Origin: Octopus sinensis
Taxonomy: Eukaryota
Reading direction: 5' to 3'
Length of the DNA: 64,000 nucleotides
Assembly: GCF_006345805.1 (NCBI RefSeq)
Contig: NC_043020.1
Coordinates: forward strand, 10,850,001 to 10,914,000
Below, in pieces: positions 2,370 through 60,222 of this stretch. Position 1 is the stretch's first letter, and each line of letters opens with the position of its first letter. The notes beneath the pieces are model-generated. The model was not told where the DNA came from. It worked only from the letters and a program-made list of their open reading frames with translations, and did no database searches. A program made the position numbers and the translations under genes.

Positions 2370-2412
2370 ATGCATCGGCACCTACCACATGTGAAACCAT
2401 CTCCTGTGAATT
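2370..2412 (+). CDS. TNF-like gene 1, stalk exon (43 nt, phase 0 in / phase 1 out): MHRHLPHVKPSPVN+T
   Basis: Polypyrimidine tract and ctgctttag acceptor before 2370; gtaagt donor at 2413. Joins in frame to the 5791 exon (T+TT=F). Flanking intron sequence resembles that around the equivalent exons of genes 2 and 3. Confidence 0.75.
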
Positions 2413-4109
2413 GTAAGTATATATATATATATATATATATATTGTCACCATTTTACTATCCATGTGTCTATAATACCTATTTATTTACTACCCACAAGGG
2501 GCTAAACACAGAGAGGACAAACAAACGGATTAAGTCGACCCCAGTGCGTAACTGGTACTTATTTAATCGACCCCGAAAGGATGAAAGGCAAAGTTGACCT
2601 CAACGGAATTTGAACTCAGAACGTAGCAGCAGATGAAATACCTATTTCTATTTCTTTATTACCCACAAGGGGCTAAACACAGAGGGGACAAACAAAGACA
2701 GACATAGGTATTAAGTCGATTACATCAACCCCAGTGCGTAACTGGTACTTAATTTATCGACCCCGAATGGATGAAAGGCAAAGTTGACCTCAGTGGAATT
2801 TGAACTCAGAACATAGCAGCAGACGAAATACCGCTAAGCATTTCGCCCGGCATCCTAACGATTCTGCCAGCTCGCCGCCCTATGTGTCTAGCCTTTCATC
2901 CTCTCGGGGACGAAATGCGTAGCCGTATTTCGTCTGCCGTTACGTTCTGAGTTCAAATTCCGCCGAGGTCGACTTTGCCTTTCATCCTTTCGGGGTCAAT
3001 AAATTAAGTACTAGTTGCGCATTGGGGTCGATATAATCAACTTAATCTGTTTGTCTGTCCTTGTTTGTCCCCTCTGTGTTTAGCCCCTTGTGGGTAGTAA
3101 AGAAATATATATCATCTTCAGCTGTAACATATTGTTACATTAATGAAATCACTAAACATGTTTTCTGTAACAGACCTTCCTCAAAGTCCAACCCTTGACC
3201 TCATTGTGGTGGGAAGGTTAAATGAGTGAGTGTCAGAGCTATGCCGTCAGGGACTTTGAGTCCCTGTTAGGGTCACCCAAGGCGGAAAGGTTTGACACCA
3301 GCGGTGCTAGGGCCGCAACCCGGCTAACTGAAGGGCAATGGTGAATTCCTGGCAGCATCTGTTCCGGAATCCAGCAGCTTTCTGATGGTGTTGGACTGCA
3401 TCTGTAGGCATCCTGCAGCAAGAAGGCATAGCACAACAACAACCTGCTAATGGTCTTGTATTTCTTATTTCTTTATTGCCCACAAAGGGCTGAACATAGA
3501 GGGGACAAACAAAGGGATTAAGTCGATTACATCGACCCCAGTGCGTAACTAGTTACTTAATTTATCGACCCCAAAAGGATGAAAGGCAAAGTCGACCTTT
3601 GCGGAATTTGAACTCAATGGCAGACGAAATACTGCTAAGCATTTCGCCCGGCGTGCTAATGTTTCTTAATTCTTTATTGCCCACAAGGGACTAAACATAG
3701 AGGGGACAAACAAGGACAGACAAACTGATTAAGATGATTACATCGACCCCAGTGCATGACTAGTACTTAATTTATCGACCCTGAAAGGATGAAAGGCAAA
3801 GTCGACCTTGGCAGAATTTGAACTCAGAACGTAATGGCAGACGAAATACCGCTAAGCATTTCGTCCGGTGCGCTAATGTTTCTGCCAGCTTGCTGCCTTA
3901 ATAGTCACGTATGGTGGCTTATGAATACAGGCAGCAACTGTTTCTGTGGACTCTGATCATCCCTTGAAATTCCTATGAACTCATCACTGGGACCAGGAAT
4001 GGCTTCAACACACTGCAGTATTGGCCACCGACAGAAAGTAACAGACATACTAAAGAAATAGATGACAAAAATACCCATATCATTAAATATACAAATGAAA
4101 TGTCTACAA

Positions 4110-4574
4110 CTGTGGTTTTCAACCAGGGTTCCGCAAGAAGTTACAAAACTGCTAAAATCGGCAGTAATTTTTAATTCTCCTGTGCAGATATGTGTGCATA
4201 AGACAATTAAATTATTCACAGGGGTTCCTTGAGCTAGTGGAATGTTTCCTTGGGGTTCCGCTCCAGCAAAAAGTTTGAAAAGCACTGACATAGACAAACA
4301 GACACACATTCTTATATCTAAATCAATGCAAAGACATACAGACACACACATTAATACAGTGGTTTTCAACCAGGGTTTCGCAGAACCTTAGGGTTCCGCC
4401 AGTACAGTCCAGGGGTTCCGCAAGAAGTTACAAAACTGCTAAAATCGGCAGTAATTTTTAATTCTCCTGTGCAGATATGTGTGCATAAGACTATTAAATT
4501 ATTGCACAGGGTTCCTCGAACCAGTGGAATGTTTCCTTGGGGTTCCGCTCCAGCAAAAAGGTTGAAAAGCACTG
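4110..4574 (+). mobile_element. Composite hAT MITE (two monomers plus captured spacer)
   Basis: TIRs CAGTGGTTTTCAACC / GGTTGAAAAGCACTG on each monomer; near-TSD gtctacaa / ctctacaa; same composite at 58884-59367. Confidence 0.8.
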
Positions 4575-4766
4575 CTCTACAATAATTAACTGGACCACGG
4601 CTTTAGATGACACTTTGATAGGAGATAACTTCCTGTGTACATTTTGTATTATCAGTCTCAGTAAGGCATTGCTACTCTACAACCGACCATATTAAAGCTC
4701 ATGAAACTATGTGATGGGTGTAATATATAGTCTTAGTTTTTTTCATTGATGGTTAATATTTGTTCA

Positions 4767-5196
4767 GATCTTTTCGGTTTGAACAGCAGTTTTTAACATA
4801 ATTCCTAGGTAACTAAACACTTTTAAACTTCGTATACTGGTAGAATGTGTTTATAAAACATCTTTTTTCTCTTGGCTTTATTGAGAAAATTCTATAGTTT
4901 GTAAGATATCTGTTGTTTTTTTTTCTTCAATTTCTGCAATTTCAACCAATCACTGACGTCTAATGAGGTAAAAAAAAACATTCTGTGCCATATGAATATG
5001 TCCCTCGTTTAAGAAACAGATTGGGTTTATTTACATTTGTGAAGAAAAAAAGATACCCTTCCCCCCGCCCCTAACCCTAACCAACCCTAACCCTAAAACA
5101 GATTGAAATGCAATAGATCGATACTAGGGTCATAATTATGGGTGACAATTTCATATGTCACCGCTAGAAAAAACTGCCGTTCAAACCGAAAAGATC
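4767..5196. mobile_element. MITE with ~28-bp TIRs and internal (CCCTAA)n
   Basis: GATCTTTTCGGTTTGAAC...GTTCAAACCGAAAAGATC; full copy at 62395-62812, end fragment near 16117-16202, relative near 30170-30475. Confidence 0.75.
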
Positions 5197-5339
5197 CACT
5201 TCTCCATGAAGATAATGATGATTGTGTAACAGCTAATATGTTGTATGGCTATATATTAGATGATAATCTGAAGTATTCAATATATGAAATGCATCAGGTA
5301 GTGACATTTTCTTGTCTTAGTAGTCTTCTGTTTGATAGT

Positions 5340-5757
5340 GAACCTGTATTCAAATATATGAACCTGTATTCAAATATATGAACCTGTATTCAAATATATG
5401 AACCTGTATTCAAATATATGAACCTGTATTCAAATATATGAACCTGTGTTCAAATATATGAACCTGTGTTCAAATATATGAACCTGTGTTCAAATATATG
5501 AACCTGTGTTCAAATATATGAACCTGTATTCAAATATATGAACCTGTATTCAAATATATGAACCTGTGTTCAAATATATGAACCTGTGTTCAAATATATG
5601 AACCTGTGTTCAAATATATGAACCTGTGTTCAAATATATGAACCTGTGTTCAAATATATGAACCTGTGTTCAAATATATGAACCTGTATTCAAATATATG
5701 AACCTGTGTTCAAATATATGAACCTGTATTCAAATATATGAACCTGTATTCAAATAC
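5340..5757. repeat. 20-bp minisatellite (GAACCTGT[A/G]TTCAAATATAT), about 21 copies
   Basis: Direct reading of tandem units; two variants differ at one base. Confidence 0.95.
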
Positions 5758-5790
5758 ATCTCTTTTAATCTGTATTTTCCCTCCTTTCAG

Positions 5791-5838
5791 TTCACCATGC
5801 CTTCTTTCACTTGAAAACTGGAGGTTACGAAAAGATGG
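5791..5838 (+). CDS. TNF-like gene 1, 48-nt exon: (F)HHAFFHLKTGGYEKM+G, first strand of the TNF homology domain
   Basis: cctttcag acceptor, gtaagt donor at 5839. Same length, phase (1/1) and near-same peptide as exons at 23327-23374 and 57732-57779. HAFFHL sits where TNF ligands have the AAHL strand. Confidence 0.85.
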
Positions 5839-5919
5839 GTAAGTTAATTTACTCTGTTACTTGTTTCAGTCATTTGACTGTGGCCATGCTGGAGCACCGC
5901 CTTTAAAACAATGTGCTAT

Positions 5920-6027
5920 GCTTACTGCACCTAGGTTTCCCAAGCGGTCACCCATCTAAGTACTGACTAGGCTCGACGTTGCTTAACTTCGGTGATCAGA
6001 CGAGAACTGGTGCTTTCAACGTGATAT
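5920..6027 (-). pseudogene. 5S rRNA retrocopy/pseudogene, about 10 nt short at the 5' end
   Basis: Minus strand reads ATATCACGTTGAAAGCACCAGTTCTCGTCTGATCACCGAAGTTAAGCAACGTCGAGCCTAGTCAGTACTTAGATGGGTGACCGCTTGGGAAACCTAGGTGCAGTAAGC, matching the metazoan 5S pattern (box A GAAGTTAAGCA, box C AGTACTTrGATGGG) with substitutions. Confidence 0.9.
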
Positions 6028-11200: not shown

Positions 11201-11389
11201 AGCATGTTGTGACATGTACAGACAGCTGTATACATATATACATACATATATATATATATATATATACATACATATATATATACATATATACATACACATA
11301 TATATATATACATACATATATATATATACATATATACATACATATATATACATATATATATACATATATATACATACATATAATATATA

Positions 11390-14267: not shown

Positions 14268-14656
14268 AGAAACCGACTAATCTACAGTGGCTGAATGACA
14301 ACAGCCAGAATGTTGGTGACATTAAACTGGTTGATGGATGTTACTTCCATATACCCCAAGATGGTCTTTACCAAATAAACTTTGCAATCCAGTTGAATAT
14401 TCCGAAAGATACTCCTGCATCAGTTGTAACCTTGATGTTAAAGAGAAAGAATAACGAAAAAGATTATGTGTTCATGAAGAAAAGTTCAAGCTCCTTAACC
14501 ATACCGGAACATGATGTGATTCAGTCGTCATTTAGATACAAACTTAAAGCCGATGAAAAAGTCTTTGTGATGATGAACATGGCAAAATTCATCAGTCGCA
14601 ATAATTTCTCCAGCTATTTGTATATCAGCAGATTAAACATAAACAATCATCACTAA
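14268..14656 (+). CDS. TNF-like gene 1, terminal exon encoding most of the TNF homology domain (EKPTNLQW...GDIKLVDGCYFHIPQDGLYQINFAIQL...SYLYISRLNINNHH*)
   Basis: ttttccag acceptor at 14267, open to TAA at 14656. L-x-W and L-x-D-G...I-P-x-D-G-L-Y motifs are typical of TNF ligands. Two paralogues in the window. Confidence 0.85.
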
Positions 14657-20660: not shown

Positions 20661-21408
20661 TCAAAATAGGTTCTTTCTTTGCTGGTATGTCATGTACAAC
20701 AGGTATGTTTTGGAAACGACCTTAGGGGAGTAGTTCTCTCTGGTCAAAAGCACTGTTGCCGATTGCATCTGAAGGTAAGAACGACTTCTATTTGTGCCTT
20801 ACAATCACATAACTTTTCACCAAAATTTCATGGGAGTTTATATTTCAAACAGCAGCTCAATGATGAAAAAAGTTTCTTTACAAAATTCTTCATTCATTCA
20901 TTATCATCATCGTTTAACATCCGTTTTCCATGCCAGCATGGGTTGGACGGTTTGACTGAGGACTAGCAAGCCAGAAGGCTGCACCAGGCTCCAATCTGAT
21001 CTGGTAGAGTTTCTACAGCTGGATGCCCTTCCTAATGCCAACCACTCCGAGAGTGTAGTGGATGCTTTTACATGCCACCGGCATGAGGGCCAGTCAGGCA
21101 GTACTGGCAACGGCCACGCTCAAATGGTGTTTTTACATACCACCTGCACAGGAGCCAGTCCAGCTGCACTGGCATCAACTTTAATCAGTCATTAACACTA
21201 AACAATCTCTCACAATCTAAATTCTTTATTTTCAAAATTAAATTAAGCAAAAGCAGAGTTCTTCAAGAGAAATGTGGCAGCATAAGAGTTAAGCAGGCAG
21301 ATAATTAAGTAATTCAAAAGAATCTCTGATTTACAATAAAGATGTTTCGTGGTCAAAGAGAAATTTTTTGGAAAACAGTCTGTGTGAAAGGCACAACCAT
21401 TAACCATT

Positions 21409-21794
21409 TTATTGTGGCTTATCTGGGTGCAAGCTGGTGATAGAACAGCGGCTTGAGTTCTTATCAGAACTGATGTATTTTACCTTGTTCATCCTCAAAT
21501 AGATGTTTTCATAAGCTTTAAGATATTGTGTTGATGCTAACGTTATCCTGGTATGTTTTGATGCAGTTAAGGTACTTAAAGTTTTTTTTATGTATTCGTA
21601 TTGCTTTCCATTCTTTTCCTCCAGTGTCACGAACATATGAAATTCAGTAGTATTTTTTGGAATGTAGATTTGAATTGTACACTGTATAAGGTAAATTCCA
21701 TCTCCAGGTACATAAAAGTAAGTTCTATCAAGCAGTTTGATATCCCCTTTACTCTTGTTCATAACTTTCATCCACTGTAAATTAGTTAGGCTCT
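21409..21794 (-). CDS. TNF-like gene 2, terminal THD exon (ESLTNLQWMKVMNKSKGDIKLLDRTYFYVPGDGIYLIQCTIQI...CSITSLHPDKPQ*)
   Basis: ttttccag acceptor (minus strand) before 21794; intact frame to TAA at 21409; aligns by eye with the 14268 and 55822 exons. Confidence 0.85.
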
Positions 21795-23326
21795 CTGGAA
21801 AACAAAAAAAAAACTGATTGATTTCTTTTACTCTTTACTCTTTCACTTGTTCAGTCATTTGACTGCGGCCATGCTGGAGCACCGCCTTTAGTCAAGCAAA
21901 TCGACCCCGAGACTTATTCTTGTAAGCCCAGTACTTATTTTATCGGTCTCTTTTGCCGAACCCTAAGTGACACGTAACATACCAGCATCGTTGTCAGCAT
22001 GGGACCGTAAACATACCAGCATCGGTTGTCAAGCAATGCTAGGGGGACAAACACAGACACAAAACACATACACACATACATATATACATACATATACGAC
22101 AGGCTTCTTTCAGTTTTCTGTCTACCAAATCACTCACAAGGCATTGGTCGGCCCGGGGCTATAGCAGAAGACACTTGCCCAAGATGCCATGCAGTGGGAC
22201 TGAAACCGGAACCATGTGGTTGGTAGCAAGCTACTTACCACACAGCACTCCTGCACCTTTTATTTGTCATTAGGACAACAAACGAAGAAGACAATAAAAA
22301 AACAGACATAAAGTGTTGGAGTGTACACAGAATGAAATTATGGAAAAGTGGAAACGGTATATATGGTCAGGAGGGCTGTGTGGTAAGTAGCTTGCTCACC
22401 AACCACATGGTTCCGGGTTCAGTCCCACTGCGTGGCATCTTGGGCAAGTGTCTTCAACTATAGCCTCAGGCCGACCAAAGCCTTGTGAGTGGATTTGATA
22501 GACAGAAACTGAAAGAAGCCCGTCATATATATGTATATATATATATATATGTGTGTATGTATATGTGTGTGTATGTTAGTGTGTCTGGTTTGTCCGACCA
22601 ACATCGCTTGACAACCGATGCTGGTGTGTTTATGTCCCTGTAACTTAGCGGTTCGGTAAAAGTGATCGATAGAATAAGTACTAGGCTTACAAAGAATAAG
22701 TCCTGGGGTACATCTGTACCTTGAACCAGTGGCACCCCTTGGTAGCACTCCCAGATCAAGGGCTTTGGAAATTATCCATAGTAGTCTCCAACCAGAAAGT
22801 CCTCAGGAACAGACCAGCCAGTCCATTTTCATCAACACCCAGACACTCCCTGAGAACATCATCCTCTGTATAGGGGTTTCAGATTTTGGCTCAAGCGAGA
22901 CAGTTGATTATATCAACCTCAGTACGCAACTGGTACTTATTTTATTGATCCTGAATGGATGAAAGGCAAAATCAACTTCGGTGGAATTTGAACTCAGAAC
23001 AGAAGGATGGACAAAATGCCACTAAACATTTTGTCCTGCGTGCTAATAATTGTACTAGCATGCCATCTTAAACAATACCTCTTTGCCAGCCTCATCTGGC
23101 ACCTGTGCCGGTGGCACGTAAAAAGCACCCACTACACTCACGGAGTGGTTGGCATTAGGAAGGGCATCCCAAGTACATAATAGTAGCCTTTAGCATATGT
23201 CTATAATGAAAGTATTTTAACACTATAATAGTAAGAATTAGCTTAAATCTGTAATTTCAGTTATTTAATGGGCATAATGCAAATGACGAGAAAAAGTGTG
23301 CAATAAATCTGTATAAATCAGCTTAC

Positions 23327-23374
23327 CTAACTCAGTGTAACCCTCTGTTATCAAGTCAAAGAAGGAATGGTGAA
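23327..23374 (-). CDS. TNF-like gene 2, 48-nt exon: HHSFFDLITEGYTEL+G
   Basis: atctttcag acceptor, gtaagc donor, phase 1/1; G+AG gives the E that starts the terminal exon. Confidence 0.85.
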
Positions 23375-24346
23375 CTGAAAGATAAGAAGAGAGAAAGCAG
23401 ACAGTGAGAAGGATATATTTTAATATAGGTTCAATATCAACAGAAGACTATTCAAAGAAAAGAGTACCTCCTGGTGTATTTCATATATTTAATATTTCAG
23501 ATTATCATCTAATAGCTAACTATACGACAGTTTCATAATCATCATTATCTCTATATAAATCATAAATAAAATTATCTTCATGGAGAACAATTATAACCAT
23601 AAATGAAAGGGAGCCAAGACTATAATAAACGTCTATATATTACACCCATCAATTGTAGTTTCATGAGCTTTAACATGTTCAGTTGTACAGTAGCAATGCC
23701 TTGCTGAGACTGATAGTACAATTCTAGTAACATGTACAGGAGGCTTCATCCATATCAAAGTGTCATCTAAAGCCATGGTCCAGTTAATATTGTAGACATT
23801 TCATTCAAATATTTAATGATGTGAGTATTTTTTCCATTTATTTTTTATGCCTGTAACTTTCAAGTTGAATGAATGTTGCCTTTAAGACTAATATATTAAG
23901 GACATGTTTAACCCATTCGTTACTGTATGCAGGAGTTAACCCAAGTACATAATAGGAGTCACTTAAACAAGTCTATAATGAAAGCTTTTTAATTGATACC
24001 GTAATAGTAAGAATTAGTGTAAATCTGATTGTAGTATTTAACCATTTGTTACTGTATTTATTTTGAGATGCTCTGTGTTTCTTTCAGTTACTTTAAATAT
24101 AACAAAGGATTTAGTAAAATAACTTAGTTATCATTCAGCTAGTGTAGGAACATAATTCTAACTAAGGTTGGTGGAAGATTTTAATTCAGAACTTATGAAA
24201 ACAAGACATTTGTACTGTAGAGCCAGAGGCGGTTTCAGCCGGGTTGGTAACGAAAGGGTTGATGATTTATTAGTGTTACAATATAATTAGTGTCAGATGA
24301 TTTTATAGACATATGGAATGAGAATTATCAGAATATATGTACTTAC

Positions 24347-24495
24347 AGGGGGTGGAGGAGGTGGTGTCGCGCAGGCAGTGGTGTCGCAGGTGGTAGTGTT
24401 GCAGGCAGTGTTGAAGTTATAGCCACAAGCAGTGGTGAAGTCGGTGTTGCCACATAGTGTGGAGGAGGTGGTGGAAGTGAAGGAGGATATTTCCT
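24347..24495 (-). CDS. TNF-like gene 2, expanded Pro/Thr/Ser-rich stalk exon (RKYPPSLPPPPPHYVATPTSPLLVAITSTLPATLPPATPLPA...); 149 nt, out of phase as assembled
   Basis: tttag acceptor and gtaagt donor; intron context resembles exons at 2370 and 60222. Phase 0 in and phase 1 out would need 148 or 151 nt. Confidence 0.7.
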
Positions 24496-28946: not shown

Positions 28947-29284
28947 CTGGGTCAGCTTAATACTAACAACAACAACCGTTACAACAAGTATGATGATACA
29001 GAAAAAGGATCCGTATTGATAATACTTTGTTTCGACAATTTTCTGACATCTAGATTTTTCCTTATCGACCTGCTGGCCTAGTGGGTCATCCGTCGATTTA
29101 TTGTCATTGGTGTTGTTCGGACTTTCGACAAGGGCTTGTTGCTCATCCGTCGATTTATTGTCATTGGTGTTGTTCGGACTTTCGACAAGGGCTTGTTGTT
29201 CATCCTTCCTTTGATCAGCTTCTTCAGGGTTTTCAGGAGGATTTTCATCTGGGTTAGGAGAATTCCTGTTTCAGCAGGAGGCAT
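28947..29284 (-). CDS. TNF-like gene 2, first coding exon: acidic/Asn/Pro-rich cytoplasmic tail plus type II transmembrane helix (MPPAE[N]RNSPNPDENPP...KYYQYGSFFCIIILVVTVVVVSIKLTQ); needs +1 nt near 29270
   Basis: ATG at 29284. The frame carrying the hydrophobic run FFCIIILVVTVVVVSI ends at a phase-0 donor CAG|gtaaaa at 28947, matching the phase-0 start of the stalk exon. ATG to donor is 338 nt, one short of 339. This frame is absent from the ORF track. Confidence 0.75.
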
Positions 29285-36451: not shown

Positions 36452-37262
36452 ATATACATATACATATATATATATACACATATATATATATACAATATAT
36501 ATATATACATATATATATATATACATATATATATATACATATAATATATCATACATATATATAATACATATATATACATACATATATATATACATACATA
36601 TATATATACATACATATATATATACATACATATATATATACATACATATATATATACATACATATATATATACATACATATATATATATACATATATATA
36701 TACATATATATATACATATATATATATATACATATATATATATACATATATATACATATATATATATACATATATATATATACATATATATATATATACA
36801 TATATATATATACATATATATATATACATATATATATATACATATATATTATATACATATATATATATACTATATATACATATATATATATACATATATA
36901 TACATATATATATATATACATATATATATATACATATATATAGATATACATATATACATATATATACATATATATTATATATATATACATATATATATAC
37001 ACATATATATATCAATATACATATATTATATACATATATATATATATATACTATATATACATATACATATATATACATATCATATATATACATATACATA
37101 TATATACATATACATATATATACATATACATATATATACATATACATATATATACATATATAATACATATATATATATATATATATACATATATATACAT
37201 ATATATATATTATATATATATACATATATATACATATATATACATATATATATATATATATA
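35392..37262. repeat. ~1.9-kb (TA)n/(TATACA)n compound microsatellite
   Basis: Direct reading. Similar tracts near 8225-8830, 11228-11390, 30725-30930, 49700-50465, 55905-56345, 63265-63600; (ATT/ATC)n at 55035-55250. Confidence 0.95.
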
Positions 37263-37263
37263 G

Positions 37264-38766: not shown

Positions 38767-38813
<47 letters not shown>

Positions 38814-41800
38814 AGTGACTGTGTGGTAAGTAGCTTGCTTACCAACCACATGGTTCCGGGTTCAGTCCCACTGCGTGGCACCTTGGGCAAGTGTCTTCTA
38901 CTATAGCCTCAGGCCGACCAAAGCCTTGTGAGTGGATTTGGTAGATGAAAACTGAAAAAAGCCCGTTGTATATATGTATATATATATACTAAGCAATAAG
39001 GGTTTAGCAACGAGTTGCCTTACCACATACCGAATTTAGAAATAGCAGTCAAAGGGTTATAGCTATTTCTTCTACTAAAAGGGAGATCTCAGTAAAAACA
39101 GCATTTGGAAGGCACAAACAGGTAAGAGAGAATGAATTGACTGCAATCTATCATACATTTTTTTAGTTATCCACGGACGTACGTTTCGAAATCAGTTTTA
39201 AGGAAAGCATACGAATTAAATATTAAATATTAAATAATAAATAATTCTATCTTACCGAAACTTCTTTTCTCTTCAGCGTAGAATACTATAATCATAAATG
39301 ATTATATATATTTCATTCTCTCTTACCTGTTGTGCCTTCCAAATGCTGTTTTTACTGAGATCTCCCTTTTAGTAGAAGAAATAGCTATAACCCTTTGACT
39401 GCTATTTCTAAATTCGGTATGTGGTAAGGCAACTCGTTGCTAAACCCTTATTGCTTAGTATTACTTAAATTTTCCTCGAATGAGGCTTTTACATGCCGAA
39501 GACTACTTGGTGTAATTGATAATTTTTTCCAAATTAATTAATTTCACCCTTCATTATTACGGATAACCATATTTTATCTCAGTAGATGACCACAGCATCT
39601 TGTTTTGGCTACACGCGGGTGGGAAGGGGCTGTTGACACAATCGTTTCATTCACAAATTGAATTCGGTGATACCAGTTGCGGGTTCTAGCTCGCTCTGAT
39701 ACTGAGTGGAGTTGGTGCCTTCTGGTATCTCAAAATTCAATATATAATCATTTATGATTATAGTATTCTACGCTGAAGAGAAAAGAAAGTTTCGGTAAGA
39801 TAGAATTATTTATTATTTAATATTTAATATTTAATTCGTATGCTTTACTTAAAACTTGATTTCGAAACGTACGTCCGTGGATAACTAAAAAAATGTATGA
39901 TAGATTGCAGTCAATTCATTCTCTCTTACCTGTTTGTGCCTTCCAAATGCTGTTTTTACTGAGATCTCCCTTTTTAGTAGAAGAAATAGCTATAACCCTT
40001 TGACTGCTATTTCTAAATTCGGTATGTGGTAAGGCAACTCGTTGCTAAACCCTTATTGCTTAGTATTACTTAAATTTTCCTCGAATGAGGCTTTTACATG
40101 CCGAAGACTACTTGGTGTAATTGATAATTTTTCCAAATTAATTAATTTCACCCTTCATTATTACGGATAACCATATTTTATCTCAGTAGATGACCACAGC
40201 ATCTTGTTTTGGCTACACGCGGGTGGGAAGGGGCTGTTGACACAATCGTTTCATTCACAAATTGAATTCGGTGATACCAGTTGCGGGTTCTAGCTCGCTC
40301 TGATACTGAGTGGAGTTGGTGCCTTCTGGTATCTCAAAATTCAATATATAATCATTTATGATTATAGTATTCTACGCTGAAGAGAAAAGAAGTTTCGGTA
40401 AGATAGAATTATTTATTATTTAATATTTAATATTTAATTCGTATGCTTTACTTAAAACTTGATTTCGAAACGTACGTCCGTGGATAACTAAAAAATGTAT
40501 GATAGATTGCAGTCAATTCATTCTCTCTTACCTGTTTGTGCCTTCCAAATGCTGTTTTTACTGAGATCTCCCTTTTTAGTAGAAGAAATAGCTATAACCC
40601 TTTGACTGCTATTTCTAAATTCGGTATGTGGTAAGGCAACTCGTTGCTAAACCCTTATTGCTTAGTATTACTTAAATTTTCCTCGAATGAGGCTTTTACA
40701 TGCCGAAGACTACTTGGTGTAATTGATAATTTTTCCAAATTAATTAATTTCACCCTTCATTATTACGGATAACCATATTTTATCTCAGTAGATGACCACA
40801 GCATCTTGTTTTGGCTACACGCGGGTGGGAAGGGGCTGTTGACACAATCGTTTCATTCACAAATTGAATTCGGTGATACCAGTTGCGGGTTCTAGCTCGC
40901 TCTGATACTGAGTGGAGTTGGTGCCTTCTGGTATCTCAAAATTCAATATATAATCATTTATGATTATAGTATTCTACGCTGAAGAGAAAAGAAGTTTCGG
41001 TAAGATAGAATTATTTATTATTTAATATTTAATATTTAATTCGTATGCTTTCCTTAAAACTTGATTTCGAAACGTACGTCCGTGGATAACTAAAAAAATG
41101 TATGATAGATTGCAGTCAATTCATTCTCTCTTACCTGTTTGTGCCTTCCAAATGCTGTTTTTACTGAGATCTCCCTTTTTAGTAGAAGAAATAGCTATAA
41201 CCCTTTGACTGCTATTTCTAAATTCGGTATGTGGTAAGGCAACTCGTTGCTAAACCCTTATTGCTTAGTATTACTTAAATTTTCCTCGAATGAGGCTTTT
41301 ACATGCCGAAGACTACTTGGTGTAATTGATAATTTTTCCAAATTAATTAATTTCACCCTTCATTATTATGTATATATATGTATATGTTTGTGTGTCTGTG
41401 TTTGTTCTCCCAAAATCGCTTGACAACCGGTGCTGGTGTGTTTACGTCCCCGTCACTTAGCGGTTCGGCAATAAGAGACCGATAGAATAAGTACTAAAAG
41501 GTGGTGCTCCAGCATGGCCGCAGTCAAATGACTGAAACAAGTAAAATAGTAAAAGAGAGAGAATATAATATAAATTGGACATGGGCAATCGTTGTATTCT
41601 TTCTTGTTTTGAGGTTCACACCCAAACGGCTGGGTGGATTCGCGTGAAAAATGGCACACTTATGCAAACGGGTGCATACATCGGAATGGGGTTTGTATTT
41701 TGGCAATCTTTCGTCTCTAGTAGACCTTTCCGTCGATTTCCTTAACAAAATTTTTTTTTTACATATGGGCTTGCGGGAACTTTTGAAGTAATGAGAGCGA

Positions 41801-42705
41801 AAGAGACTAAGAGAAAGCGATTGTATGACGAGGGAAGTTCTTTTAAAGTTACCGTGCATGGGAGCATTGATGTACATGTGTGTGTGTGTTTGATGGGGTG
41901 TGGGAGACAGACAGTATGTTGTGTAAGTGAAGTGCTTCTGTTAGTGTGTGTGAAGAGACAGAGTAATGTGTGAAAGAAAGAGATAACTGAAATTTTTTAC
42001 TCGGTGTATGTGTATATGTATGTATATCACTTCAAAAGTTCCCGCAAGCCCATATGTAAAAAAAAAAAAATTTTTTACGGAAATCGACGGAAAGGTCTAG
42101 TAGAGACGAAAGATCGCCTGTATTTTTTTCCTAGTCCCACCCCCGATATTTACCTAGAAAATTGATTAAAACTTTTCTATTGGAATTCCCCGTTTGTTCT
42201 GCCATTAAAACAACCAGTTGCTCACAAAAGCCGGCATATACCATTTCGCTAGAAACAAGGGGAGTGCAGGATGACAGTCAGCCACAACTTCCACTATGCT
42301 GTCTCTCTTCTTTCACCTCTCGCACGCACCCACAAACACACACACACACATCCATTTCATATATCTTCTTCCAATTTCTGCTCTCTGCAAATAAAATTTT
42401 GGGATTAATGTATAATTTCTTTCTATGTTCATAATTAAATCACTGTTTTTAATGATTAGACAGAGGTCCAATAGAATAGCTCTCAGAAACAGACTACATA
42501 CAAATTCGTTCTTCACAACTCCTGAAGCTGTTTTTTCTGGCAAGGGGGCAGGGAGTCCGGAAATTTTCATACGGCTGGAGGCTCCAATCGATACAGGGGA
42601 CCCGAAATTATGAAGTTGAGAAAAGGTGGTATAGATTATGCCTAATCAAAAACGATCACAGCGACATCATCCAAAAAGGCCGGGTGAAACAGGGTTTTGC
42701 TGTTA

Positions 42706-42744
<39 letters not shown>

Positions 42745-44240
42745 AGTGACTGTGTGGTAAGTAGCTTGCTTACCAACCACATGGTTCCGGGTTCAGTCCC
42801 ACTGCGTGGCACCTTGGGCAAGTGTCTTCTACTATAGCCTCAGGCCGACCAAAGCCTTGTGAGTGGATTTGGTAGATGAAAACTGAAAAAAGCCCGTTGT
42901 ATATATGTATATATATATATGTATATGTTTGTGTGTCTGTGTTTGTCCTCCCAAAATCGCTTGACAACCGGTGCTGGTGTGTTTACGTCCCCGTCACTTA
43001 GCGGTTCGGCAATAAGAGACCGATAGAATAAGTACTAAAAGGTGGTGCTCCAGCATGGCCGCAGTCAAATGACTGAAACAAGTAAAAGAGTAAAAGAGAG
43101 AGAATATAATATAAATTGGACATGGGCAATCGTTGTATTCTTTCTTGTTTTGAGGTTCACACCCAAACGGCTGGGTGGATTCGCGTGAAAAAATGGCACA
43201 CTTATGCAAACGGGTGCATACATCGGAATGGGGTTTGTATTTTGGCAATCTTTCGTCTCTAGTAGACCTTTCCGTCGATTTCCTAAAAAATTTTTTTTTT
43301 CACATATGGGCTTGCGGGAACTTTTGAAGTAATGAGAGCGAAAGAGACTAAGAGAAAGCGATTGTATGACGAGGGAAGTTCTTTTGAAGTTACCGTGCAT
43401 GGGAGCATTGATGTACATGTGTGTGTGTGTTTGATGGGGTGTGGGAGACAGACAGTATGTTGTGTAAGTGAAGTGCTTCTGTTAGTGTGTGTGAAGAGAC
43501 AGAGTAATGTGTGAAAGAAAGAGATAACTGAAATTTTTTACTCGGTGTATGTGTATATGTATGTATATCACTTCAAAAGTTCCCGCAAGCCCATATGTAA
43601 AAAAAAAAAATTTTTTACGGAAATCGACGGAAAGGTCTAGTAGAGACGAAAGATCGCCTGTATTTTTTTCCTAGTCCCACCCCCGATATTTACCTAGAAA
43701 ATTGATTAAAACTTTTTCTATTGGAATTCCCCCGTTTGTTCTGCCATTAAAACAACCAGTTGCTCACAAAAGCCGGCATATACCATTTCGCTAGAAACAA
43801 GGGGAGTGCAGGATGACAGTCAGCCACAACTTCCACTATGCTGTCTCTCTTCTTTCACCTCTCGCACGCACCCACAAACACACACACACACATCCATTTC
43901 ATATATCTTCTTCCAATTTCTGCTCTCTGCAAATAAAATTTTGGGATTAATGTATAATTTCTTTCTATGTTCATAATTAAATCACTGTTTTTAATGATAA
44001 GACAGAGGTCCAATAGAATAGCTCTCAGAAACATACAAATTCGTTCTTCACAACTCCTGAAGCTGTTTTTTCTGGCAAGGGGGCAGGGAGTCCGGAAATT
44101 TTCATACGGCTGGAGGCTCCAATCGATACAGGGGACCCGAAATTATGAAGTTGAGAAAAGGTGGTATAGATTATGCCTAATCGAAAACGATCACAGCGAC
44201 ATCATCCAAAAAGGCCGGGTGAAACAGGGTTTTGCTGTTA

Positions 44241-44279
<39 letters not shown>

Positions 44280-45782
44280 AGTGACTGTGTGGTAAGTAGC
44301 TTGCTTACCAACCACATGGTTCCGGGTTCAGTCCCACTGCGTGGCACCTTGGGCAAGTGTCTTCTACTATAGCCTCAGGCCGACCAAAGCCTTGTGAGTG
44401 GATTTGGTAGATGAAAACTGAAACAAGCCCGTTGTATATATGTATATATATATATGTATATGTTTGTGTGTCTGTGTTTGTCCTCCCAAAATCGCTTGAC
44501 AACCGGTGCTGGTGTGTTTACGTCCCCGTCACTTAGCGGTTCGGCAATAAGAGACCGATAGAATAAGTACTAAAAGGTGGTGCTCCAGCATGGCCGCAGT
44601 CAAATGACTGAAACAAGTAAAAGAGTAAAAGAGAGAGAATATAATATAAATTGGACATGGGCAATCGTTGTATTCTTTCTTGTTTTGAGGTTCACACCCA
44701 AACGGCTGGGTGGATTCGCGTGAAAAATGGCACACTTATGCAAACGGGTGCATACATCGGAATGGGGTTTGTATTTTGGCAATCTTTCGTCTCTAGTAGA
44801 CCTTTCCGTCGATTTCCTAAAAAATTTTTTTTTTCACATATGGGCTTGCGGGAACTTTTGAAGTAATGAGAGCGAAAGAGACTAAGAGAAAGCGATTGTA
44901 TGACGAGGGAAGTTCTTTTGAAGTTACCGTGCATGGGAGCATTGATGTACATGTGTGTGTGTGTTTGATGGGGTGTGGGAGACAGACAGTATGTTGTGTA
45001 AGTGAAGTGCTTCTGTTAGTGTGTGTGAAGAGACAGAGTAATGTGTGAAAGAAAGAGATAACTGAAATTTTTTACTCGGTGTATGTGTATATGTATGTAT
45101 ATCACTTCAAAAGTTCCCGCAAGCCCATATGTAAAAAAAAAAAAATTTTTTACGGAAATCGACGGAAAGGTCTAGTAGAGACGAAAGATCGCCTGTATTT
45201 TTTTCCTAGTCCCACCCCCGATATTTACCTAGAAAATTGATTAAAACTTTTTCTATTGGAATTCCCCCGTTTGTTCTGCCATTAAAACAACCAGTTGCTC
45301 ACAAAAGCCGGCATATACCATTTCGCTAGAAACAAGGGGAGTGCAGGATGACAGTCAGCCACAACTTCCACTATGCTGTCTCTCTTCTTTCACCTCTCGC
45401 ACGCACCCACAAACACACACACACACATCCATTTCATATATCTTCTTCCAATTTCTGCTCTCTGCAAATAAAATTTTGGGATTAATGTATAATTTCTTTC
45501 TATGTTCATAATTAAATCACTGTTTTTAATGATTAGACAGAGGTCCAATAGAATAGCTCTCAGAAACAGACTACATACAAATTCGTTCTTCACAACTCCT
45601 GAAGCTGTTTTTTCTGGCAAGGGGGCAGGGAGTCCGGAAATTTTCATACGGCTGGAGGCTCCAATCGATACAGGGGACCCGAAATTATGAAGTTGAGAAA
45701 AGGTGGTATAGATTATGCCTAATCGAAAACGATCACAGCGACATCATCCAAAAAGGCCGGGTGAAACAGGGTTTTGCTGTTA

Positions 45783-45818
<36 letters not shown>

Positions 45819-47320
45819 GAGTGACTGTGTGGTAAGTAGCTTGCTACCAACCACATGGTTCCGGGTTCAGTCCCACTGCGTGGCACCTTGGGCAAGTGTC
45901 TTCTACTATAGCCTCAGGCCGACCAAAGCCTTGTGAGTGGATTTGGTAGATGAAAACTGAAAAAAGCCCGTTGTATATATGTATATATATATATGTATAT
46001 GTTTGTGTGTCTGTGTTTGTCCTCCCAAAATCGCTTGACAACCGGTGCTGGTGTGTTTACGTCCCCGTCACTTAGCGGTTCGGCAATAAGAGACCGATAG
46101 AATAAGTACTAAAAGGTGGTGCTCCAGCATGGCCGCAGTCAAATGACTGAAACAAGTAAAAGAGTAAAAGAGAGAGAATATAATATAAATTGGACATGGG
46201 CAATCGTTGTATTCTTTCTTGTTTTGAGGTTCACACCCAAACGGCTGGGTGGATTCGCGTGAAAAATGGCACACTTATGCAAACGGGTGCATACATCGGA
46301 ATGGGGTTTGTATTTTGGCAATCTTTCGTCTCTAGTAGACCTTTCCGTCGATTTCCTAAAAATTTTTTTTTTCACATATGGGCTTGCGGGAACTTTTGAA
46401 GTAATGAGAGCGAAAGAGACTAAGAGAAAGCGATTGTATGACGAGGGAAGTTCTTTTGAAGTTACCGTGCATGGGAGCATTGATGTACATGTGTGTGTGT
46501 GTTTGATGGGGTGTGGGAGACAGACAGTATGTTGTGTAAGTGAAGTGCTTCTGTTAGTGTGTGTGAAGAGACAGAGTAATGTGTGAAAGAAAGAGATAAC
46601 TGAAATTTTTTACTCGGTGTATGTGTATATGTATGTATATCACTTCAAAAGTTCCCGCAAGCCCATATGTAAAAAAAAAAAAATTTTTTACGGAAATCGA
46701 CGGAAAGGTCTAGTAGAGACGAAAGATCGCCTGTATTTTTTTCCTAGTCCCACCCCCGATATTTACCTAGAAAATTGATTAAAACTTTTTCTATTGGAAT
46801 TCCCCCGTTTGTTCTGCCATTAAAACAACCAGTTGCTCACAAAAGCCGGCATATACCATTTCGCTAGAAACAAGGGGAGTGCAGGATGACAGTCAGCCAC
46901 AACTTCCACTATGCTGTCTCTCTTCTTTCACCTCTCGCACGCACCCACAAACACACACACACACATCCATTTCATATATCTTCTTCCAATTTCTGCTCTC
47001 TGCAAATAAAATTTTGGGATTAATGTATAATTTCTTTCTATGTTCATAATTAAATCACTGTTTTTAATGATTAGACAGAGGTCCAATAGAATAGCTCTCA
47101 GAAACAGACTACATACAAATTCGTTCTTCACAACTCCTGAAGCTGTTTTTTCTGGCAAGGGGGCAGGGAGTCCGGAAATTTTCATACGGCTGGAGGCTCC
47201 AATCGATACAGGGGACCCGAAATTATGAAGTTGAGAAAAGGTGGTATAGATTATGCCTAACCGAAAACGATCACAGCGACATCATCCAAAAAGGCCGGGT
47301 GAAACAGGGTTTTGCTGTTA

Positions 47321-47361
<41 letters not shown>

Positions 47362-48864
47362 AGTGACTGTGTGGTAAGTAGCTTGCTTACCAACCACATG
47401 GTTCCGGGTTCAGTCCCACTGCGTGGCACCTTGGGCAAGTGTCTTCTACTATAGCCTCAGGCCGACCAAAGCCTTGTGAGTGGATTTGGTAGATGAAAAC
47501 TGAAAAAAGCCCGTTGTATATATGTATATATATATATGTATATGTTTGTGTGTCTGTGTTTGTCCTCCCAAAATCGCTTGACAACCGGTGCTGGTGTGTT
47601 TACGTCCCCGTCACTTAGCGGTTCGGCAATAAGAGACCGATAGAATAAGTACTAAAAGGTGGTGCTCCAGCATGGCCGCAGTCAAATGACTGAAACAAGT
47701 AAAAGAGTAAAAGAGAGAGAATATAATATAAATTGGACATGGGCAATCGTTGTATTCTTTCTTGTTTTGAGGTTCACACCCAAACGGCTGGGTGGATTCG
47801 CGTGAAAAATGACACACTTATGCAAACGGGTGCATACATCGGAATGGGGTTTGTATTTTGGCAATCTTTCGTCTCTAGTAGACCTTTCCGTCGATTTCCT
47901 TAAAAAATTTTTTTTTTCACATATGGGCTTGCGGGAACTTTTGAAGTAATGAGAGCGAAAGAGACTAAGAGAAAGCGATTGTATGACGAGGGAAGTTCTT
48001 TTGAAGTTACCGTGCATGGGAGCATTGATGTACATGTGTGTGTGTGTTTGATGGGGTGTGGGAGACAGACAGTATGTTGTGTAAGTGAAGTGCTTCTGTT
48101 AGTGTGTGTGAAGAGACAGAGTAATGTGTGAAAGAAAGAGATAACTGAAATTTTTTACTCGGTGTATGTGTATATGTATGTATATCACTTCAAAAGTTCC
48201 CGCAAGCCCATATGTAAAAAAAAAAAAATTTTTACGGAAATCGACGGAAAGGTCTAGTAGAGACGAAAGATCGCCTGTATTTTTTTCCTAGTCCCACCCC
48301 CGATATTTACCTAGAAAATTGATTAAAACTTTTTCTATTGGAATTCCCCCGTTTGTTCTGCCATTAAAACAACCAGTTGCTCACAAAAGCCGGCATATAC
48401 CATTTCGCTAGAAACAAGGGGAGTGCAGGATGACAGTCAGCCACAACTTCCACTATGCTGTCTCTCTTCTTTCACCTCTCGCACGCACCCACAAACACAC
48501 ACACACACATCCATTTCATATATCTTCTTCCAATTTCTGCTCTCTGCAAATAAAATTTTGGGATTAATGTATAATTTCTTTCTATGTTCATAATTAAATC
48601 ACTGTTTTTAATGATTAGACAGAGGTCCAATAGAATAGCTCTCAGAAACAGACTACATACAAATTCGTTCTTCACAACTCCTGAAGCTGTTTTTTCTGGC
48701 AAGGGGGCAGGGAGTCCGGAAATTTTCATACGGCTGGAGGCTCCAATCGATACAGGGGACCCGAAATTATGAAGTTGAGAAAAGGTGGTATAGATTATGC
48801 CTAACCGAAAACGATCACAGCGACATCATCCAAAAAGGCCGGGTGAAACAGGGTTTTGCTGTTA

Positions 48865-48900
<36 letters not shown>

Positions 48901-49292
48901 GAGTGACTGTGTGGTAAGTAGCTTGCTTACCAACCACATGGTTCCGGGTTCAGTCCCACTGCGTGGCACCTTGGGCAAGTGTCTTCTACTATAGCCTCAG
49001 GCCGACCAAAGCCTTGTGAGTGGATTTGGTAGATGAAAACTGAAAAAAGCCCGTTGTATATATGTATATATATATATGTATATGTTTGTGTGTCTGTGTT
49101 TGTCCTCCCAAAATCGCTTGACAACCGGTGCTGGTGTGTTTACGTCCCCGTCACTTAGCGGTTCGGCAAAAGAGACCGATACAATAAGTACTAGGCTTAC
49201 AAAGAATAAGTCCTGGGGTCGATTTGCTCGACTAAAAAGGTGGTGCTCCAGCATGGCCACAGTCAAATGACTGAAACAAGTAAAAGAGTAAG
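37264..49292 (+). repeat. Tandem array of six ~1.54-kb units (SINE A + unique DNA + Merlin-like MITE), closed by a seventh SINE
   Basis: SINE heads at about 37264, 38812, 42743, 44278, 45818, 47360, 48900; periods 1535-1548 bp, except unit 2 which carries a 2.4-kb insertion. Confidence 0.95.
38989..41368. mobile_element. 2.4-kb insertion: 5' inverted partial copy followed by ~3.4 head-to-tail copies of a ~603-bp unit
   Basis: CATTCTCTCTTACC recurs at 39314, 39917, 40519, 41122; 38989-39310 is the reverse complement of part of the unit; inserted in the (TA)n of one SINE. Confidence 0.85.
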
Positions 49293-55439: not shown

Positions 55440-55822
55440 TTAACGATGATGATTTATGTGTAAACTGGTGATAGACAAATAACTTGTACTGTTGCTGATA
55501 AACTTTGCCATGTTCATCTTCAAAACAATTGTATCATTTGCTTTGAATTGGTAAGTAAACGATGATTGCATTACGACATGTTCTGGTGTATTTTTTAAGG
55601 CATTTGAACTTTTTTTTATAGATTTATATTTTGGTCCATTCATTCTTTGAAAGATCAAGGATACAGTTACTGAAGGAGTATCTTCCGGAATGTACAATTG
55701 CACGGCACAGCCTATTTGGTAAATCCCATCTTGTGGCACATATATGCAGGTTTCATTAACCAAATGAAAGTTGCCGACATCCTGGCTCTCATCTTTGAGC
55801 CAATGTAAATCAGTGACACCCT
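55440..55822 (-). CDS. TNF-like gene 3, terminal THD exon (EGVTDLHWLKDESQDVGNFHLVNETCIYVPQDGIYQIGCAVQL...SYLSITSLHINHHR*)
   Basis: ctttttcag acceptor before 55822; open to stop at 55440; about half of residues identical to gene 1 by hand alignment. Confidence 0.85.
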
Positions 55823-57680: not shown

Positions 57681-57731
57681 AATACAAATTATAAGAAATA
57701 GTGTGCAATAACTCTGTATAAATGAACTTAC

Positions 57732-57779
57732 CCATCTCGGTGTAACCCTCTGTTTTCAGGTGGAAGAAGGCATGGTGAG
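57732..57779 (-). CDS. TNF-like gene 3, 48-nt exon: (S)HHAFFHLKTEGYTEM+G
   Basis: atctttcag acceptor, gtaagt donor, phase 1/1, paralogous to 5791-5838. Confidence 0.85.
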
Positions 57780-57920
57780 CTGAAAGATAAGAAGAGAGAA
57801 AACAGATGGTGAAAAAGATATATTTTAATACAGGTTCAATATCAAACAGAAGACTGTTCAGAGAAAAGGGCACTTTCTGATGTATTTCACAAATTTAATA
57901 TTCCAGATTATTATCTAATA

Positions 57921-58227
57921 CTAGCAGTATCGCCTGGCGTTGCTCAGGTTTGTAAGAGAAATAACTATATAAGCATTTTTAGAGAGTTACTTCCCTTATA
58001 TAACCCGAGCAAAAATCATAAAAAATGTGGAAAAATGATGGTAAATTTTTTTTTAAATCGTAGACTCATCGTAGACATGCACTAATACCCAGAAGGGCTC
58101 GATATGAATGACGACTATAAGATACCCACTTTTGGTTAAACTGCACCGCAAAATGTGGGAGTAGTTAGGAATCTAAATCGGAGGAGACAGAGTCTCACAC
58201 ACACAACTTCAATTTTATATGTAAAGA
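57921..58227 (-). mobile_element. Non-autonomous Helitron (307 bp)
   Basis: Minus strand A|TCTTTACATATAAAA...GC-rich hairpin...CTAG|T, no TSD; absent from the alignable gene 2 intron position near 23510. Confidence 0.8.
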
Positions 58228-58793
58228 TATAACTATACAGTATATTAACTGTTTCACAATCATCATTAACCATAATGAAAAATGATCTACATGGAGAACA
58301 AGTATTAAACCCTTTAGCATTCAAACCGGCCGTATCCGGCCAAAATATCCTCCCTTGTTTTATGTTCAAATTGGCTAGATCTGGCTTCTCACACCAGCCT
58401 GACTATATAATTCTAAAAATGAATAGTTACTTCATCAAAACCTCAAAGCTACAAGATAAATGCTGGATTAATTTAAAACAATGCAAATAAATAAGCATTA
58501 CTTTTGGCAGAATACCGTGAATACTAAAGGGTTAACCATTAACGAAAAGAGAGCCAAGACTATATAAGCATCCTTATATTACACCCATCGCACAGTAGTT
58601 TCATGAGCTTTAACATGGTCAGTTGTACAGTAGTAATGCCTTGCTAGGACTGATAATACAATTCTAGTAAACGTGTGGTCCAGTTAATTATTGTGGATAT
58701 TCCTTTCATGTATTTAATGATGTGGGTATTTTTACCATTTATTTCTGTAGTATGTCTGATATTTTTCAAGTTGCCTATTTTAAGACTGTAATG

Positions 58794-59482
58794 CAATGGT
58801 TCCCAAACTTTTTAGAGTCGCGAACCACTATTTATCACACCAGTTTATGACGACCCACTTAACTCTACTGAGTATCTCGATAGCAGTGCTTTTCAACCTT
58901 TTTTGCTGGAGCGGAACCCCAAGGAAGCATTCCACTGGCTCGAGGAACCCCTGAGCAATAATTTAATAGTCTTCTGCACACATATCTGCACAGGAGAATT
59001 AAAAATTACTGCCGATTTTAGCAGTTTTGTAACTTCTTGTGGAACCCCTGGACTATGCTGGCGGAACCCTAAGGTTCTGCGGAACCCTGGTTGAAAACCA
59101 CTGTATTAATGTGTGTGTCTGTATGTCTTTGCATTGATTTAGATATAACGGTGCTTTTCAACTTTTTTGCTGGAGCGGAACCCCAAGGAAGCATTCCACT
59201 GGCTCGAGGAACCCCTGAGCAATAATTTAATAGTCTTATGCACACATATCTGCACAGGAGAATTAAAAATTACTGCCGATTTTAGCAGTTTTGTAACTTC
59301 TTGCGGAACCCCTGGACTGTACTGGCGGAACCCTAACGTTCCGCGGAACCCTGGTTGAAAACCACTGCTCTATAGACAGCAGTTAATCAAAGCTAATGCG
59401 TAATTTTATAACTTTTTGCGACCCACTAAGATTCTGTTCGCGACCCGTCTGTGGGTTGCGAGTCATAGTTTGGGAACCACTG
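58794..59482. mobile_element. hAT MITE with the composite hAT element (58884-59367) nested inside
   Basis: Outer CAATGGTTCCCAAAC...GTTTGGGAACCACTG with TSD CTGTAATG (58786-58793, 59483-59490); inner near-TSD ctcgatag / ctctatag. Confidence 0.85.
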
Positions 59483-60191
59483 CTGTAATGTATTGAGGAC
59501 ATGTTTAGTGATTTCATTACTAGGTGCAATGGCCCAGTGGGTAGGGCAGCGGACTCGTGGTCATAGGATCGCGGTTTCGATTCCCAGACCGGGCGTTGTG
59601 AGTGTTTATTGAGCGAAAACACCTAAAGCTCCATGAGGCTCCGGCAGGGGATGGTGGTGATCCCTGCTGTACTCTTTCACTACAACTTTCTCTCACTCTT
59701 ACTTCCTGTTTCTGTTGTACCTGTATTTCAAAGAGCCGGCCTTGTCACTCTCTGTGTCACGCTGAATATCCCCGAGAACTACGTTAAGGGTACACGTGTC
59801 TGTGGAGTGCTCAGCCACTTACACGTTAATTTCACGAGCAGGCTGTTCCGTTGATTCAGATCAACCGGAACCCTCGTCGTCATAACCGACGGAGTGCTTC
59901 CACATAAAGTCAAAACGTATTAAAAAATAGAGGTATTTATATATTTTAGCTTATAAGTATAATTTAAACTCTTTTACTTGTTTCAGTCATTTGACTGTGG
60001 CCATGCTCAAGCATCGCTTTTAGTCAAGCAAATCGACCCCGGGACTTTCCGTTGATTCGGATCAACCGGAACCCTCGTCGTCGTAACCGACGGAGTGCTT
60101 CCATCCAGTGATTTCATTAATGTTACAATATATTACAGAGTCAAGATAATTTTATTGAGACATGGAAGGTGGAACGGTGGAAGTAACTTAC

Positions 60192-60222
60192 ATCGTGGAG
60201 GTGGCTGTTGCTTATTGTCCTT
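60192..60222 (-). CDS. TNF-like gene 3, short stalk exon (31 nt): KDNKQQPPPR+T
   Basis: ctgttttag acceptor, gtaagt donor, phase 0/1, joins in frame to the 57779 exon; flanks resemble those of 2370 and 24495 exons. Confidence 0.7.

Follow-up and report, generated by a model that had tools for sequence, protein, structure and literature searches.

Three neighboring genes for very divergent, membrane-anchored TNF-family proteins in Octopus sinensis

Which protein family do three widely split genes in the genome of Octopus sinensis belong to, and are all of them still working genes? They lie in a stretch of 64,000 nucleotides (nt), C24:10850001-10914000, hereafter the window; the genome searched comprises 2.72 Gb in 13,516 contigs. 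An earlier interpretation made from the letters alone (the sequence-only reading) had proposed a locally duplicated cluster of three divergent ligand-like genes of the TNF superfamily, and its genes 1, 2 and 3 are called A, B and C here. The answer to the first question is that the window carries three neighboring genes for very divergent membrane-anchored TNF-family proteins. With a probability of roughly 85%, A, B and C belong to a branch of the TNF ligand superfamily (TNFSF) that is very divergent, expanded in octopods and restricted to cephalopods, follows the four-exon plan of vertebrate TNF and encodes products predicted to be type II and trimeric. The homology, fold, topology and exon plan of the cluster and its tandem duplication are demonstrated by the analysis below, and the reading as TNF ligands is supported by the fold, by profile matches of the family as a whole, by the type II topology and by the structure of the genes.

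The window is AT-rich and abounds in microsatellites and dispersed repeats. Gene A lies on the plus strand and genes B and C on the minus strand, so the inversion of A relative to its neighbors was read correctly from the letters. In each gene the last exon is a plain open reading frame (ORF) of 141-196 codons that encodes approximately 90% of the TNF domain; the earlier description of the cluster as mostly hidden from the ORF track was therefore overstated. The domains encoded by these last exons share 39-55% pairwise protein identity, and their genome-wide paralog matches have expect values (E) of 1e-19 to 1e-81, which together exclude chance. The exons of the three genes are as follows (window positions unless another contig coordinate is given).

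Gene A, exon 1: C24:10845120-10845335, plus strand, outside the window and 7.0 kb upstream; starts MPPKQ..., with a basic patch and a transmembrane helix; CAG/GTAATA donor in phase 0.
Gene A, exon 2: 2370..2412, plus strand; 43 nt, stalk MHRHLPHVKPSPVN; enters in phase 0 and leaves in phase 1, AG acceptor, GTAAGT donor; located by tblastn with the O. bimaculoides ortholog.
Gene A, exon 3: 5791..5838, plus strand; 48 nt, (F)HHAFFHLKTGGYEKM; first beta-strand with the AHL-type motif.
Gene A, exon 4: 14268..14656, plus strand; ORF of 129 codons plus stop, the bulk of the TNF homology domain.
Gene B, exon 1: 28947..29284, minus strand; 338 nt, start MPPA..., acidic and Asn-rich tail, transmembrane helix FFCIIILVVTVVVVSIKLT, CAG/GTAAAA donor.
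Gene B, exon 2: 24347..24495, minus strand; 149 nt; stalk rich in Pro and Thr, RKYPPSLPPPPPHYVATPTSPLL..., found by homology of its intron flanks.
Gene B, exon 3: 23327..23374, minus strand; 48 nt, HHSFFDLITEGYTEL.
Gene B, exon 4: 21409..21794, minus strand; ORF of 127 codons plus stop, TNF homology domain.
Gene C, exon 1: window-equivalent 64350..64130, minus strand, 130-350 bp past the window end; starts MTKPITDAEQ..., transmembrane helix YGIIILAIIAVVVVIICLT.
Gene C, exon 2: 60192..60222, minus strand; 31 nt, KDNKQQPPPR, with intron flanks homologous to those of A exon 2.
Gene C, exon 3: 57732..57779, minus strand; 48 nt, (S)HHAFFHLKTEGYTEM.
Gene C, exon 4: 55440..55822, minus strand; ORF of 126 codons plus stop, TNF homology domain.

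Every junction proposed beforehand (2412/5791, 5838/14268, 23327/21794, 60192/57779 and 57732/55822) pairs a GTAAG donor with an AG acceptor that follows a pyrimidine tract, and the frame stays open across it; the 48-nt exon is indeed fixed, occurring at 5791..5838, 23374..23327 and 57779..57732. The first exons of A and C, sought beyond the window, were both found, and the N-terminal tail with one hydrophobic helix that had been described for B corresponds to the exon at 29284..28947 on the minus strand. Spliced together, exons 1-4 of A give an uninterrupted protein of 231 residues, the sole intact gene of the trio as assembled. The claim of three in-frame paralogs stands for exons 3-4 of all three genes and, in A and C, for exon 2 as well; beyond these it fails at frame breaks near 29,257 in exon 1 of B, at 24,347-24,400 in exon 2 of B and near window-equivalent 64,133 at the end of exon 1 of C.

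That these exons encode TNF-type domains is seen most clearly at the level of the family. The Pfam TNF model (PF00229) matches 12 of 15 family members, with a best E of 2.8e-7, and one ortholog carries a precomputed PF00229 match. Searching the Protein Data Bank (PDB) with a profile of 13 family sequences retrieved TNFSF ligands only, beginning with a zebrafish structure at 4e-5 (7dov, an entry named lymphotoxin-alpha and titled TNF-alpha) and followed by GITRL and TRAIL; single-sequence PDB searches with the cluster proteins were suggestive only. An AlphaFold2 model of the spliced domain of A, computed from a 20-sequence alignment, has ten strands, a mean predicted local distance difference test score of 83.6 and a predicted template modeling (TM) score of 0.78, and the residues of exon 3 form its strand E2-7. 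All of the top 50 PDB matches of this model in Foldseek are TNFSF ligands, including RANKL, CD40L and TL1A. TNF-alpha itself aligns with a TM score of 0.75-0.84 and a root-mean-square deviation of 2.4-3.0 Å over approximately 141-152 columns, and a model of the O. bimaculoides ortholog of A returned the same list of TNFSF matches at lower confidence. Of the two kinds of TNF-fold match on which the sequence-only reading had staked its case in advance, that by structure prediction was found for A, and that by hidden Markov model was found at the level of the family. Among the motifs of the family, the AHL-type strand A, L-x-W and P-x-x-G-x-Y are present, and their L, W, G and Y residues are invariant in 13-20 paralogs.

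Several observations weigh against this assignment. Taken singly, the three proteins stay below the Pfam TNF gathering cut-off of 23 bits, with 18.4 for A, 14.2 for B and 12.9 for C (E 0.002-0.11), so that the Pfam evidence favors TNF for the family and falls short for each member of the trio. The Y-x-Q-V and C-terminal F-G motifs, which sit in core and interface strands of TNF ligands, are replaced in all three genes, with the hydrophobic pattern of the last strand kept; the substitute strings quoted in the sequence-only reading (QINFAIQL, LIQCTIQI and QIGCAVQL; YLYISRL, RCSITSL and YLSITSL) are all present in the translations. A canonical TRAIL/RANKL-like TNFSF ligand exon exists elsewhere in the genome, at C3:14667068-14667451 (+), unlinked to the cluster. 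It keeps the motifs replaced in the cluster, as G-V-Y-F-I-Y-S-Q-V and Y-F-G-L-F-K-I, and reaches 89 bits in Pfam TNF and an E of 8e-19 to TRAIL, whereas the cluster genes reach 13-18 bits; the cluster profile aligns with it only weakly (hhalign 74%, E 2.8e-5). The best PDB matches of this ligand are TRAIL and RANKL, and it shares with the cluster the superfamily fold and a last exon in which one ORF covers most of the domain. Neither B nor C can be translated from end to end in its assembled form. Finally, the expression evidence belongs to the family and not to A, B or C themselves: a transcript-like contig of 1,277 nt (run SRR16213285) encodes a whole, intron-free family member of 225 residues. 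Similarity between this contig and genomic exon 4 of the paralog at 11.012 Mb starts at the predicted exon 3/4 junction, which supports the splice plan.

The topology of the cluster proteins is likewise that of TNF ligands, as far as sequence can predict it. In all three genes exon 1 encodes one hydrophobic 19-mer (Kyte-Doolittle mean 2.8-3.1); in A the helix is preceded by a basic stretch, KPRWRRK, as expected for a type II signal-anchor, and the model of its O. bimaculoides ortholog has a helix at residues 35-63. The proteins are predicted to be of type II: the tail would lie in the cytoplasm and the stalk outside the cell, with a single signal-anchor helix between them. The long Pro/Thr-rich stalk of B (approximately 47 residues) looks, by its composition, like a glycosylated spacer. 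Searches by tblastn with the first-exon peptides of A or of its O. bimaculoides ortholog did not find the first exons of B and C, because these tails evolve too fast. A scan that looked for ORFs starting with ATG and containing a hydrophobic window also missed exon 1 of B, since its ATG is out of frame; the exon was later recovered through the O. bimaculoides ortholog of B. A regular-expression search for B exon 2 as a short exon running from phase 0 to phase 1 gave no result.

Gene structure offers a further line of evidence. The coding exons of A measure 216, 43, 48 and 392 nt, with intron phases 0/1/1, and those of mouse TNF measure 186, 55, 48 and 419 bp (PMC2212449, Figure 1 legend). By arithmetic from these lengths, the mouse phases are 0/1/1 as well. 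Judged by position in the protein, the third exon of mouse TNF would, like that of A, carry the AH-type first strand. Agreement in both the 48-nt third exon and the phases indicates that the exon plan is ancestral and not an octopus invention, and it provides an independent argument, from exon lengths and phases, for common descent with vertebrate TNF.

The comparison extends to vertebrate TNF-alpha and lymphotoxin-alpha (TNFSF2 and TNFSF1) more broadly. Like the cluster proteins, they combine type II topology with a ten-strand jelly-roll and display the AHL-type first strand, L-x-W and P-x-x-G-x-Y; the mammalian TNF, LTA and LTB genes also form a tandem cluster comparable to the octopus array. 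However, identity in structural alignments is only 13-19%, the octopus domain is shorter, with short loops, and its introns span kilobases, whereas those of vertebrate TNF span a few hundred bases. The vertebrate Y-x-Q-V corresponds to F/C-A-I/V-Q-L in the cluster, and the classical C-terminal strand Y-F-G-I-I-A-L to Y-L-S-I-T-S-L; judged from this last strand, trimer assembly would be expected to be kept despite the replacement of the motifs.

Could the jelly-roll belong to another family, or the similarity to no family at all? C1q-domain proteins share the jelly-roll fold class and the trimeric state with TNF ligands and are hugely expanded in mollusks, and A matches Pfam C1q (PF00386) weakly (E 0.0091, 16.6 bits) beside its TNF match. 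However, across the 15 family members C1q is matched by one and TNF by 12, and C1q chains are absent from the top 50 fold matches of both the A model and the model of its O. bimaculoides ortholog. Moreover, C1q proteins start with a signal peptide and, as a rule, have a collagen stalk, whereas the cluster proteins begin with a signal-anchor and lack a Gly-X-Y stalk, and their exon plan equals that of mouse TNF. On these grounds a C1q identity was rejected as very improbable. It is scarcely credible that the genes are chance ORFs or repeat-derived similarity, even in a window whose microsatellites, copies resembling short interspersed nuclear elements, long interspersed nuclear element and 1.5-kb tandem array generate many long spurious ORFs; this idea is refuted by the paralog matches given above, relatives conserved in Octopus, Argonauta and Acanthosepion, canonical splice sites and the high-confidence fold model.

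The second question, whether the genes still work, is the harder one, and it is possible, if doubtful, that B and C, perhaps with the whole local group, are decaying remnants, pseudogenes that yield no protein in O. sinensis. Gene B gives this idea its strongest footing, with two independent frame breaks. Its conserved ATG (MPPA...) lies one frame off from the transmembrane ORF of exon 1 as assembled, and its exon 2 is 149 nt long, compared with 142 nt in O. vulgaris; the two extra 2-nt stretches of the O. sinensis exon leave exons 1 and 3 joinable in no single frame. Around exon 3 (23300-23400, 101 nt) there are nine substitutions relative to O. vulgaris, and the exon 4 query (21380-21820, 441 nt) has five, with 5/5 of the coding differences amino-acid-changing. 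The ratio of nonsynonymous to synonymous rates (dN/dS) of B exon 4 against its paralogs is 0.54-1.16. Searches of a collection of 5.8 billion proteins turned up no O. sinensis protein model of A, B or C, although four neighboring paralogs are modeled. Set against these points, the orthologs of B are intact in O. vulgaris (CAI9740212, 285 residues) and O. bimaculoides (LOC106872472), the exon 4 of the latter being 71.5% identical; exon 1 of B was compared with the intact O. vulgaris ortholog at the protein level and, for its 3' part, also at the DNA level. Gene A is intact, with an exon 4 region 100% identical to that of O. vulgaris over 441 nt and an exon 4 82% identical to that of the O. bimaculoides ortholog (tblastn), and the last exons of all three genes are open.

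In C, decay is suggested by an exon 1 that ends in phase 2 and not in phase 0, which makes it incompatible with exon 2, but the break comes down to the length of a single A-run. Two unplaced scaffolds, C11389 and C12200, hold copies of C whose last exon is protein-identical, and in the C11389 copy the A-run has the in-frame length. Over 305 nt, C11389 and C24 differ by nine gap positions (eight indels, seven of them 1 nt long) and two substitutions, and within exon 1 mainly by single-base indels; such an indel-heavy difference is the signature of long-read consensus errors in the assembly, and the break in C may therefore not be biological. An intact counterpart of C forms the N-terminal half of XP_052832125 in O. 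bimaculoides, with exon 4 of C 92% identical to the matching part of XP_052832125.1. For both genes, the indels are either errors of the consensus or signs that the O. sinensis copies have recently decayed. With more lesions, including the substitutions around exon 3, B is the better pseudogene candidate.

Some features of these genes and their counterparts deserve mention in their own right. The cytoplasmic tail of B contains a 57-nt in-frame tandem duplication in exon 1 (29060-29195, minus strand), in which EQQALVESPNNTNDNKSTD occurs twice; O. vulgaris has a single copy. The two scaffolds carrying copies of C (compared with window 55440-64350) appear to be haplotigs that were left uncollapsed, with a consensus of lower quality. 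In O. bimaculoides, XP_052832125.1 (LOC106872472, 315 residues) joins exons 1-3 and the first approximately 51 residues of exon 4 of the C ortholog to exons 2-4 of the B ortholog, a fusion that represents either read-through or chimeric transcription of neighboring paralogs or a prediction artefact; older LOC106872472 isoforms (234-235 residues) comprise the B part only. Intron 2 of A contains a minisatellite at 5339-5756, with 20.9 copies of a 20-nt unit (TGAACCTGTGTTCAAATATA) at 98% matches, which ends 35 nt 5' of the 48-nt exon. In O. vulgaris OX597837.1, an annotated product of 297 residues has the strand and position expected for the A ortholog and is longer than the modeled 231 residues.

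How far does the family extend beyond the trio? Copies of the last exon number at least 11 on C24, spread over 630 kb (10.38-11.02 Mb), so that local duplication had been inferred correctly and on too small a scale.

Last-exon copies on C24: 10.381, 10.400, 10.423, 10.450, 10.864 (A), 10.871 (B), 10.905 (C), 10.961, 10.964, 10.976 and 11.012 Mb.

C30 and several unplaced scaffolds hold more copies, of which two duplicate C and one has several stops, and the genome contains at least 13 distinct cluster-type loci. In a phylogenetic tree, A groups with O. bimaculoides LOC106872473, B with LOC106872472 and the O. vulgaris gene, and most other copies with an O. bimaculoides partner of their own, which implies that most of the duplications are older than the split of these species; the group formed by 10.961, 10.964, C6118 and C6339 is young. 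On exon 4, dN/dS is 0.31 between A and C and 0.54-0.61 in pairs that include B, with a family median of 0.49; values above 1 in the young group derive from only one or two synonymous changes.

A HMMER profile search of 1.84 billion representative proteins at E<=1e-3 returned 22 relatives, and those with names are all from cephalopods (Octopus, Argonauta and Acanthosepion). The protein from Acanthosepion, a cuttlefish, and three unnamed contigs form a clade sister to the octopod sequences. At the same threshold the cluster profile reached no bivalve, gastropod or insect protein, Drosophila Eiger included, although the TNFSF genes of mollusks such as oyster and scallop resemble the cluster in their lineage-specific tandem expansion. 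The earlier label "lineage-specific" can thus be retained for the subfamily, but not for the exon plan shared with mouse TNF.

Between the genes, the window is filled with repeats. A degraded non-long-terminal-repeat (non-LTR) retrotransposon lies between B exon 1 and a tandem array (31612-34686, minus strand), split over several frames, with endonuclease-reverse transcriptase (PF14529, E 6e-9) and reverse transcriptase (PF00078, E 1e-32) domains; the orthologous region of O. vulgaris has non-LTR copies in both orientations. The array itself, at 37227-49193 between B and C, consists of approximately 6-7 copies of an approximately 1,540-bp unit at 96-99.5% identity, interrupted by about 2.4 kb at 38988-41364. 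It was detected by blastn with one unit, the period limit of Tandem Repeats Finder being 500. Each unit embeds a dispersed repeat of approximately 300-400 bp that is also present at at least eight other places in the window, and a search of the dispersed repeats with ARAGORN gave no tRNA-like heads.

To what extent was the family already known? Its orthologs and paralogs appear in RefSeq as "uncharacterized protein LOC..." models, and UniProt labels several relatives "TNF family profile domain-containing protein" or THD domain on the basis of a PROSITE profile, which settles the question of annotation that the sequence-only reading had left open. A preprint counts eight TNFSF homologs in O. 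vulgaris, six of them in one well-supported clade, and 23-27 TNFSF genes in bivalves (10.1101/2024.07.27.603686); its supplement gives counts without accession numbers, and the cluster is compared with it by count only. The Nautilus genome paper and the O. vulgaris hemocyte transcriptome paper contain nothing specific on octopus TNF ligands. For genes A and C, protein models seem to be missing from both O. sinensis and O. vulgaris. The present analysis adds the extent and arrangement of the O. sinensis array, the match of its exon plan to that of mouse TNF, the assembly state of A, B and C, and the apparent gap in the models of A and C.

The exons divide the labor in the manner of vertebrate TNF. 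Exon 1 supplies the cytoplasmic tail and signal-anchor helix, exon 2 a short or Pro/Thr-rich stalk, the 48-nt exon 3 the first strand, and exon 4 the rest of the ten-strand jelly-roll. By analogy with TNF ligands, the products would be type II membrane proteins that display the jelly-roll outside the cell and trimerize through it. From the membrane or after shedding, they may signal to cells bearing cysteine-rich TNF-receptor-like proteins. Receptors are available: TNFR_c6 cysteine-rich domains score above the cut-off at at least three loci in the genome (C3:102.05 Mb, C7:1.46 Mb and C7:50.0 Mb). Like other mollusk TNFs, the products probably function in innate immune responses or in cell death.

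The cytokines of cephalopod immunity have been poorly described so far, and the array offers a defined set of possible partners for the few TNFR-like receptors of the genome. The cluster should be of use to invertebrate immunologists and to annotators alike: the exon plan shared with mouse TNF makes a straightforward case, easy to check, that these very divergent genes come from the same ancestral gene as vertebrate TNF, and the frame breaks in B and C flag sites where assembly and annotation need checking. More tentatively, octopods may have built a large, fast-evolving tandem array of TNF-like genes while retaining the vertebrate exon plan, which would date that plan to the bilaterian ancestor and make the array an independent cephalopod counterpart of the vertebrate TNF/lymphotoxin cluster; the altered motifs could likewise point to altered subunit assembly or pairing, for example in trimers mixed from different paralogs.

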